64,000 nt of DNA from Haliotis cracherodii (lineage: Eukaryota), in the NCBI RefSeq assembly GCF_022045235.1, contig NW_027266343.1, positions 13,330,001-13,394,000 on the forward strand. The letters are read 5' to 3'. The first letter of the stretch is position 1. Each line of letters starts with the position of its first letter. Shown one piece after another: positions 11,947 to 13,645 of the stretch. Below the pieces are notes generated by a model that saw only the letters and a program-made list of their open reading frames with translations, was not told the origin of the DNA and did no database searches. Made by a program: the position numbers and the translations under genes.

Positions 11947-13645
11947 ATGTCTAAAAAGCAACGTCAGAGTTTACTGGAGGTTTTCAAACCAAAAAGCCTA
12001 GTTTTCGATGATGAAGACTCACAGGATAGCGGCTTTGAGTCTCTCTGCAGTGACGACGAGGTGTGTTGAATAAATATATCACGCTTTTTTATCTATAAGA
12101 CAGATAGAAAGATATACACAAAGAAAGGAAAGACAGTTATTTAGAAACTTAAAGGCAATGTATGTTTTTTTCTTCAGGTATCACCCCAATCTTTGGTTCA
12201 CATGAGAACAAGTTTTCATGGCACAAGGAAGTCGCTTTTCACGGGAAAGAGACCACGTGACTATGATGATGAAAATGACGAACACGTTCAAGCTCAGGAG
12301 ATGAAGAAACAAAAATCCGACAACGTTGTCCATGAAACCCAAGTAGAATTAACATCAGAAGTCATGAAAACAGCTGTGGACAAAATGCAAAATGAGGTTG
12401 ACCTGATCGGTGATGGTTCACAGGTTTGTAGAAGGTTTATTATTCCATTCTCATGTCGATTATTAAGCGGTTCTGAATTGCCTAATTAATTGCAATAATA
12501 CGGATATTCATCATTTTGTAAACATTTCTATCACATAGACATATAGCATTATTATTGAAGTTATCATAAAGTTTTCCTCATGTTTTAGATTCATAGTCTC
12601 CCAACCATACAAGGCAGACACAAGGATCTCAAATCTGTGTCTTCACACACAGTCAGTCAACTTCTTGCTGGAAAATATGATGACGTCATTTCCGGTTACC
12701 AAATCATCGACTGTCGTTACCCCTATGAATATGAAGGCGGACATATTGAGGTAAAATGTCTCAAATATTACAAATATATTCAACTCCTTTTTTTAATATT
12801 GGTGTGGCGATCTTACACATTATAAACAAATCTACAATGGCAGAGATCAACATTCTGAAGGTCTGTAATCTAAATACTGCTATTTTTCAACTTCAGGGTG
12901 CCCAGAACCTTCACAAAGAGGCTCTGATCACAGATTTAGTGGCCAATCTACAAGCGAGGGACTCCATTCAACGGAACATCCTGGTCTTCCACCGTGAATT
13001 TTCATCAGAGAGAGGCCCGAAACTGTAAGTATTTCATAAAAGTGGTTGATATAAACAACTTCAAATATATGTGAACCGGTTTATACGTTTATTGCACGAT
13101 GTAAAATACTAATGACATCGAAAGTAATTATCATTTTCTAATGCAACGTTTCATTCAGTGATGTATCTTCTGATACAGATTGCGCCATCTTAGAAACCTT
13201 GACCGGAAGATGAACAGTGACCGTTACCCTTTCCTCTTCTACCCGGAAGTATACCTGTTAGATGGTGGATACAAGGCCTTCTATGAACAACATCAGGTAG
13301 GTTGAGAAACGTTTGAAACTGACCGGAGTCCCTTTTCGGGAAATATAAATATGTCTATACCTAGTGTACATGTAAACGTTTTTCGTATACATTTTAATAA
13401 AGCAGAGTTATTTGTAATGTGCTACTTTTTTTTGGTAAAATTGTATGTAATAATGTGTCTTTACAACTCTATTTCAGATTCAGTGTCAACCAAGAAACTA
13501 TGTTGCCATGCTACACCAGGATTACTCCAAACAACTACGTCACTTCCGGGTGAAGTCCAAGTCGTGGACAGCAGGAGAGAAACAGAGCATGCGCAGTCGA
13601 CGTCTCATAATAGACACGTCTCCGCTCAAGATGCCTCTTTGGTAA
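11947..13645 (+). CDS. cdc25: Cdc25 copy 3, open reading frame, catalytic Cys replaced by Arg (HREFSSER); candidate pseudophosphatase
   Basis: Exons 11947-12060, 12178-12423, 12589-12750, 12897-13024, 13179-13296, 13478-13645 are all GT-AG and in frame. Codon 12993-12995 is CGT where paralogs have TGT. Confidence 0.88.

Follow-up and report, generated by a model that had tools for sequence, protein, structure and literature searches.

One gene of the Cdc25 family in the black abalone, Haliotis cracherodii, carries an arginine codon at the position where all the other copies found in the genome encode the catalytic cysteine. The gene lies on the forward strand at positions 11947–13645 of a stretch of 64,000 nucleotides of contig NW_027266343.1 (C80:13330001–13394000 of the assembly), called here the window. 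Position 12993 of the window, the first letter of the altered codon, is C80:13,342,993, and position 13505, the site of a second change discussed below, is C80:13,343,505. We propose, with a probability of roughly 60%, that this focal copy is a young dead allele which is probably segregating. It would be an open, incipient pseudogene of a tandem family that evolves by birth and death and counts at least 22 members. In this model, a T-to-C change at 12993 would have swapped the catalytic Cys of one Cdc25 paralog for Arg, and the Arg protein would be unable to form the phospho-cysteine intermediate and hence to activate Cdk1, a loss of activity predicted from the established chemistry of Cdc25. 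The change would be younger than the separation of the focal copy from its sister, located 19 kb upstream, and most likely also younger than the split of the reference haplotype from a 99.5%-identical haplotype of another individual, so that the allele would probably be segregating and not fixed. About 21 cysteine-bearing copies would make the loss tolerable, and the Arg allele is presumably recent, not fixed and selectively neutral. The proposal is favoured by the Cys of the sister copy and of congeners, by a second radical change private to the reference among the runs compared, by a probable T at 12993 in the other haplotype, by the damaged copies of the array and by the existence of at least 21 copies with Cys.

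The exons of the focal gene were read straight from the letters of the window, and the exon peptides were searched separately, without spliced joining. The six exons total 936 nt (311 codons) and are free of internal stops; the five introns are all of the GT..AG type. Exon 1 (11947–12060, 38 codons) begins at the ATG in 11947 and holds DSGFES, a DSGxxS-type motif. Exon 2 (12178–12423, 82 codons) corresponds to a fast-evolving regulatory region. The rhodanese/Cdc25 catalytic domain begins in exon 3 (12589–12750, 54 codons). Exon 4 (12897–13024) encodes the active-site loop and ends in a split codon, CT before the intron and A after it, with a GTAAGT donor; exon 5 (13179–13296) and exon 6 (13478–13645, with the stop TAA at 13643–13645) complete the gene. 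NCBI already models this gene as XP_071089160.1 (P0016 in our protein set), a protein of 211 aa which includes the Arg (HREFSSER) and starts at an internal Met of exon 2 (MKTAVDKMQ); this model was the query in the full-length searches. No KEN motif was found in the exon translations.

An initial annotation of the stretch, made from the sequence alone, had described a change of HCEFSSER to HREFSSER by TGT to CGT at 12993, in a gene with its reading frame, splice sites, degron and promoter retained. The letters of the window agree with this description for the codon, the frame and the splice sites. Positions 12990–13013 read CAC CGT GAA TTT TCA TCA GAG AGA (H-R-E-F-S-S-E-R), the altered codon being CGT at 12993–12995. 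The segment EFSSERGPK of the loop is identical in the paralogs, the CX5R arginine is retained and, as the same annotation had noted for the flanking codons, a segment of 57 nt is identical to that of copy 1 of the array except at 12993. The DSG-type motif of exon 1 is indeed present and is degron-like by its sequence. As for the promoter, the region 11308–11868 (+) is common to array copies and is promoter-like by conservation only: it aligns at 66–71% with what lies upstream of five other copies, the figure for the sister copy being about 91%.

The altered codon is unique in the family. A six-frame search of the 1.18-Gb H. cracherodii assembly with exon 4, which provides a lower bound, detected at least 22 loci: 14 at C80:13.267–13.364 Mb, four at 47.26–47.28 Mb and four at 49.81–49.83 Mb. 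Twenty-one of the 22 read HCEFSSER, with TGT (Cys, the catalytic nucleophile) at the altered codon and hence T at the position of 12993, and the focal copy is the sole exception; inside the window, the five other exon-4 copies all have TGT. At the protein level, 167 proteins were fetched, of which one (P0001) was left out as lacking a catalytic domain. Among the remaining 166, Cys occupies the active-site position in 165 (150 HC.., one HCEYSSQR and 14 YCEFSSER) and P0016 alone has Arg.

The nearest copy, L002, lies outside the window at C80:13322536-13325661, 19 kb upstream of the focal gene, and possesses the Cys. The two copies, which belong to a segmental duplication of approximately 5.5 kb, are 94.6% identical over 2,832 aligned nucleotides, introns included. 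At 90% identity, P0016 clusters with three proteins, the L002 product XP_071089158.1 (P0124) and the H. rufescens proteins XP_046358402.2 and XP_046358404.2 (P0122 and P0123), and these three all read HCEFSSER. Orthologs carrying Cys had been named in the initial annotation as an observation that would speak against a dead regulator, and this is what was found among the annotated congeners. With P0016 as query, no transcript-derived protein from Logan or ENA was closer than the NCBI genome-annotation proteins. We also considered that the focal copy and L002 might be two haplotypes misplaced in tandem. This was ruled out by their 5.4% difference at aligned sites, with about 290 gapped positions on each side, and by the presence of copy 1 and of a truncated copy between them.

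By descent, the focal copy is a Cdc25 member, and from its sequence it is not expected to be an active phosphatase. P0016 has a precomputed match to the Pfam entry PF00581, and phmmer gave E values of 6.8e-51 with CDC25C (3op3) and 1.1e-50 with CDC25B (1cwr); E is about 1e-50 to the catalytic domains of human CDC25A/B/C. In the alignments with 3op3 and 1cwr, Arg107 of P0016 was opposite the catalytic Cys. The Arg, Arg and Tyr of the segment LRNLDRK...RY, encoded by exon 5, were aligned opposite R488, R492 and Y497 of CDC25B, which we take to be its Cdk-cyclin docking residues. The residues facing them are kept. The focal protein is 95% identical to active paralogs. That the Cys of the CX5R motif is the nucleophile, a point on which the initial annotation relied, is established, and the C473S mutation of CDC25B fully abolishes its activity on para-nitrophenyl phosphate (PMC7274447); this mutant also serves as an inactive form for structural work (PMC13033960).

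A second unusual residue was present on the same allele. In the alignment of the 166 family proteins, we inspected the 11 residues which differ between the focal copy and L002. The residues specific to L002 sit at variable columns, the most conserved being a Gly found in 79% of the proteins. Two residues of the focal copy were never seen in the other aligned proteins: Arg107, in a column with Cys in 164 of 164, and Ala166, in a column with Pro in 160 of 163 (98%). Ala166 is encoded by GCC at 13505–13507 in exon 6, and P166A is a second derived substitution at a near-invariant Pro.

Substitution rates were computed codon by codon and exon by exon, leaving out the split codon and the codons unaligned at exon ends. 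Between the focal copy and L002 there were 19 nonsynonymous and 14 synonymous differences (nonsynonymous divergence, dN, 0.027; synonymous divergence, dS, 0.077; their ratio, omega, 0.34; binomial P 0.004 against neutrality). When polarised with 11 other copies of the cluster, the differences were distributed as 8 nonsynonymous to 6 synonymous on the focal branch and 10 to 7 on the L002 branch, with 2 unresolved (Fisher P = 1). The 8:6 ratio of the focal branch is below the neutral ratio of 3.8:1, with a P value of 0.052. The focal copy evolves no faster than its live sister, which leaves two options, a recent loss or selection that continues to act on the copy. The focal branch gives no indication of a prolonged phase of relaxed constraint, in keeping with a recent loss. 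As regards relaxed constraint, the rate shows no excess, but P166A falls in a column with 98% Pro; as for the features expected of a pseudogene, a disabling lesion in a duplicated copy and an intact sister, L002, are both present.

Two copies of the array are visibly damaged, and provide evidence that copies are dying in it. Upstream of the focal gene by 1.2 kb, at 9891–10713 (+), lies a truncated copy with the Cys intact, which is made of exons 2–4 only, with exon 3 in part, and is devoid of exons 1, 5 and 6. The array copy L007 (C80:13282283-13285411) has an in-frame stop in exon 1, which 211-aa models of the NCBI type, starting in exon 2, would bypass.

A search among sequencing runs gave 24 runs under coded organism labels, 20 of which hold part of the focal stretch. 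The best four runs, from organism A and a single study, hold 0.72–0.76 of the words of the stretch, and the other runs of organism A and those of organisms B–E hold 0.37–0.48. None of the runs holding the stretch is recorded as RNA; its words are nearly absent from three small runs of organism A presumed to be RNA. Four runs, all in the form of Logan contigs, were compared with the window at 90% likeness: two of organism A from two studies (X1 and X7), one of organism B (X6) and one of organism F that is presumed to be RNA (X20). Among the positions listed, the window letters at 11954, 12322, 12579 and 13505 were found in none of the covering runs, and that at 13324 appeared in X7 alone, as a minority. 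Ala166 results from the G at 13505, which was absent from all four, the other letter accounting for the whole depth in X1 (20/20), X7 (128.2/128.2), X6 (77.4/77.4) and X20 (28.8/28.8). The reference haplotype of the focal gene carries, for the runs compared, several private alleles, three of which are nonsynonymous. Three derived nonsynonymous letters of the window, at 11954, 12993 and 13505, are missing from X1, the one at 12993 being deduced and not read.

The contigs of X20 differ from the window by 4–8%. A contig covers 11896–12055 at exon 1, the depth is zero in intron 1 and in most of the other intronic bins, and the spliced joints 13024>13179 and 13296>13478 are present, the latter, between exons 5 and 6, as 13292>13474 (cut +4). 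Close relatives of the focal gene are transcribed and spliced as modelled in X20, an observation which says nothing on the expression of the Arg copy.

The state of position 12993 in another individual was approached through the ends of the contigs of X1. The haplotype present in this run, approximately 99.5% identical to the window, shows 7 substitutions in 1,547 nt over seven listed contigs. The sole contig that X1 has between 12784 and 12942 is record 6, which extends from 12612 to 12997 with a depth of 8.52 and one difference that is not shown. The next focal-type contig starts at 13005. We built a graph of words of k = 31 from the 22 loci of the assembly itself, with C or T in the focal copy, and with or without copy 1 and L002. 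A node ended at 12997 in all four scenarios built with T at 12993, and the four built with C never gave this end. In the latter, the focal path continues as far as 13023, unless copy 1 has words in common with it, in which case the breaks fall at 12988 and 12992. A restart at 13005 was predicted in all scenarios, as seen in X1. For 12997 to be the first break, copy 1 and L002 must both lack those words in X1; over exon 2 no L002-type contig was seen in this run, the total depth of 10.3 corresponding to two contigs of 4.62 and 5.72. Judging from the contig ends, X1 probably carries T (Cys) at 12993, and this would be the single difference of record 6.

The absence of 12993 among the differences reported for the runs was considered as support for C, and rejected as uninformative since only part of the differences are given. 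For instance, record 11 of X20 has 7 other letters, only 3 of which appear among them. The listed differences are all at least 31 letters from a contig end in some run, and the paralogs split at 12992, which always places their T within 30 letters of a node end.

The same runs bear on the pair formed by the focal copy and L002. In the segments 12268–12423 and 12609–12988, X1, X7 and X6 displayed only one or two focal-type contigs, although from the assembly one would expect the focal type and the L002 type together (94% alike). In X7, letters derived from L002 (A at 12646) and from the focal copy (G at 12942) occur mixed in the contigs. The pair may vary in copy number, or may be reshuffled by conversion, between individuals.

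Several points weigh against a young dead allele. The frame, the splice sites, the degron-like motif and the docking residues are all intact, and the focal-branch omega of about 0.35 is equally compatible with a continued selection on a function of the dead enzyme. In addition, the letter at 12993 was never directly seen in any run besides the assembly; the T of X1 rests on contig end points and on a simulation which assumes that Logan contigs are unitig-like and that copy 1 and L002 do not share the relevant words in that individual; and the comparison rests on four runs only, two of organism A and two under other labels. The initial annotation had itself cautioned that the change could be recent, polymorphic or a consensus error. 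The first two options are favoured by the Cys of the sister copy and congeners, by the geometry of the X1 contigs and by the private G at 13505, and the last is the least likely of the three given a quality value of about 62 and a C present in no paralog.

A nearby possibility is that the Arg allele drifted to fixation, or to a high frequency, in H. cracherodii, the focal copy being a redundant dead gene throughout the species and with no new function. The large size and redundancy of the family, with its other damaged members, would permit this, and the radical substitution P166A fits with decay. We regard it as unlikely, as none of the four runs has the G at 13505 that this allele also carries, as the contigs of X1 favour T at 12993 and as the focal branch shows no nonsynonymous excess.

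The initial annotation had suggested a pseudophosphatase acting as a brake inside the array. In such a scenario the Arg copy would be fixed and selected as a dead Cdc25, docking Cdk1-cyclin B, 14-3-3, Plk1 or beta-TrCP unproductively and damping or sharpening the effect of the active copies. It draws on the open frame, the canonical splice sites, the conservation of DSGFES and of the residues aligned with the docking residues of CDC25B, the 8:6 ratio of the focal branch, and the transcription and splicing of related copies in X20. Regulatory dead phosphatases do exist in other folds, such as STYX, and EGG-4/5 during the oocyte-to-zygote transition (PMC8622459). From the sequence, an unproductive binding of partners by the Arg protein is conceivable. 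Nevertheless, Cys is found in the sister copy, in both nearest H. rufescens proteins and in 165 of the 166 family proteins, the near-invariant Pro has received a second hit which is private to the reference among the four runs compared, and the geometry of the X1 contigs suggests T. The focal copy and its sister evolve at the same rate, so nothing marks a change of function. The gene is one among at least 22, a small dosage for a brake, and its words are almost entirely missing from the three small organism A runs presumed to be RNA. Finally, a bulky Arg at the bottom of the phosphate pocket may block the phosphate of the substrate, unlike the Cys-to-Ser traps. The brake, which found no support in these data, is in our opinion quite unlikely.

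That the germline gene could have TGT, the C at 12993 stemming from an error of consensus or assembly or from a somatic change of the sequenced tissue, might be argued from a single-base difference inside a stretch otherwise identical to paralogs and from window letters seen in none of the covering runs or, at 13324, as a minority, but this is very improbable with a C found in no other copy, which rules out paralog collapse or mis-phasing as its source, and with private letters at about 0.3% of the window sites, as the published heterozygosity predicts. The black abalone assembly, produced with HiFi reads and hifiasm, is described in PMC9709981 with a base quality value of 62.8 and a heterozygosity of 1.56%. 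At this quality, about 5e-7 errors are implied per base, which makes a consensus error far less likely than a true variant. The T-to-C change at 12993 is best taken as a real variant of the haplotype of the sequenced animal, a consensus error being unlikely.

The rest of the window contains other members of the array. A local tblastn search with the six separate exon peptides showed four further complete Cdc25 copies, at 843–2527 (+), 19523–21713 (+), 28237–26014 (−) and 35007–33077 (−), in addition to the truncated copy and to an isolated exon-6-like fragment at 5253–5179 (−). The NCBI model P0008 (326 aa), which continues the protein of copy 1 into the truncated copy, looks like a read-through mis-model. 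Two local direct duplications were observed between copy 1 and the truncated copy, at 8038–8392 (179 nt, 99.4%) and 8697–9361 (about 340 nt, 91%). Across the 14 copies of the cluster, third codon positions are unusually uniform in two places: the active-site part of exon 4 (12968–13022), where 7 of 19 vary, mostly as singletons, and exon 5 (13180–13296), where 8 of 39 vary. By comparison, 15 of 23 vary in the initial part of exon 4 and 33 of 55 in exon 6. This uniformity could be explained by gene conversion or by a constraint at the nucleotide level, such as splicing signals. A search of representative proteins with exon 2 produced only 3 matches. The protein P0001 (840 aa), without a catalytic domain, consists of approximately 11 tandem repeats of the Cdc25 N-terminal regulatory segment (AVERLET...), and may be a gene model spanning a tandem array of exon-2-like units. 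Beyond the Cdc25 array, minisatellite arrays were located at 51889–52501, 56362–57204, 58025–58610 and 63216–63555, with periods of 76, 36, 127 and 31, respectively; the array with the 36-nt period explains the G+C peak at 56–58 kb of the window.

If the focal copy is merely a young dead allele, it offers an ordinary glimpse of the birth-and-death turnover that takes place within a large and unexplained expansion of Cdc25 in abalone. Its use would then lie mainly in a call for caution, as NCBI designates XP_071089160.1 "M-phase inducer phosphatase-like" though the nucleophile is missing. If the allele turned out to be common and expressed, it would represent the first natural dead Cdc25 and a route to study the tuning of gene-dosage arrays of mitotic activators. 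A natural pseudophosphatase of the Cdc25 class, with an Arg copy common or fixed, expressed in oocytes or early embryos and acting as a competitive inhibitor on Cdk1-cyclin B or on Cdc25 regulators, so as to set the threshold of the mitotic switch driven by about 21 active copies, is a slim prospect. Among the papers listed in our literature searches, we found none on a Cdc25-class pseudophosphatase; in passages of PMC2175518 and PMC8622459, the words "pseudophosphatase" and "Cdc25" co-occur through the CH2 domain of MAP kinase phosphatases or ACR2-type reductases. Nor did these listings contain anything relevant on Cdc25 arrays of abalone or other molluscs. The main text of a paper on copy-number variation in abalone (PMC9936805) makes no mention of Cdc25-type genes, and its supplements may list the genes variable in copy number.

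The focal copy can finally be compared with known systems. The M-phase inducer phosphatases Cdc25/String/Twine, with a rhodanese fold and an HCX5R motif, share with it the PF00581 domain, the EFSSER loop, the CX5R arginine, the N-terminal DSG-type motif and the conserved C-terminal tail. It differs from them by the Arg in place of the nucleophilic Cys, by Ala in place of Pro166, by its short length (311 aa) and by its membership in a tandem family of at least 22. In the catalytically dead CDC25B C473S, the residue replaced is the same. The Ser of this mutant is isosteric and keeps the phosphate pocket, whereas the large and cationic Arg of the focal protein would fill or distort it, and substrate trapping by the focal protein cannot be assumed since Arg is not isosteric. 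STYX (Cys to Gly), MK-STYX and EGG-4/EGG-5 (Cys to Asp) are, like the focal copy, CX5R enzymes in which the Cys is replaced. According to PMC8622459, EGG-4/5 bind a kinase at the oocyte-to-zygote transition, the kind of role proposed for the focal copy. However, these proteins have a protein tyrosine phosphatase/dual-specificity phosphatase fold and substitutions conserved across species, and the focal substitution occurs neither in the sister copy nor in the nearest congener proteins. The CH2 domains of MAP kinase phosphatases and TBC1D23 are inactive binding platforms of the rhodanese fold (PMC8622459 and PMC7274447). They are ancient, diverged domains inside multidomain proteins, whereas the focal case is a one-residue change in a canonical Cdc25. 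The unprocessed pseudogenes of birth-and-death tandem families resemble the focal copy as a young duplicate with a disabling change, a second radical substitution and truncated or stop-bearing neighbours in the array; the focal copy differs from them in having no stop or frameshift yet, intact signals and no excess in rate. The focal copy can be described as a missense-disabled copy in a tandem family.

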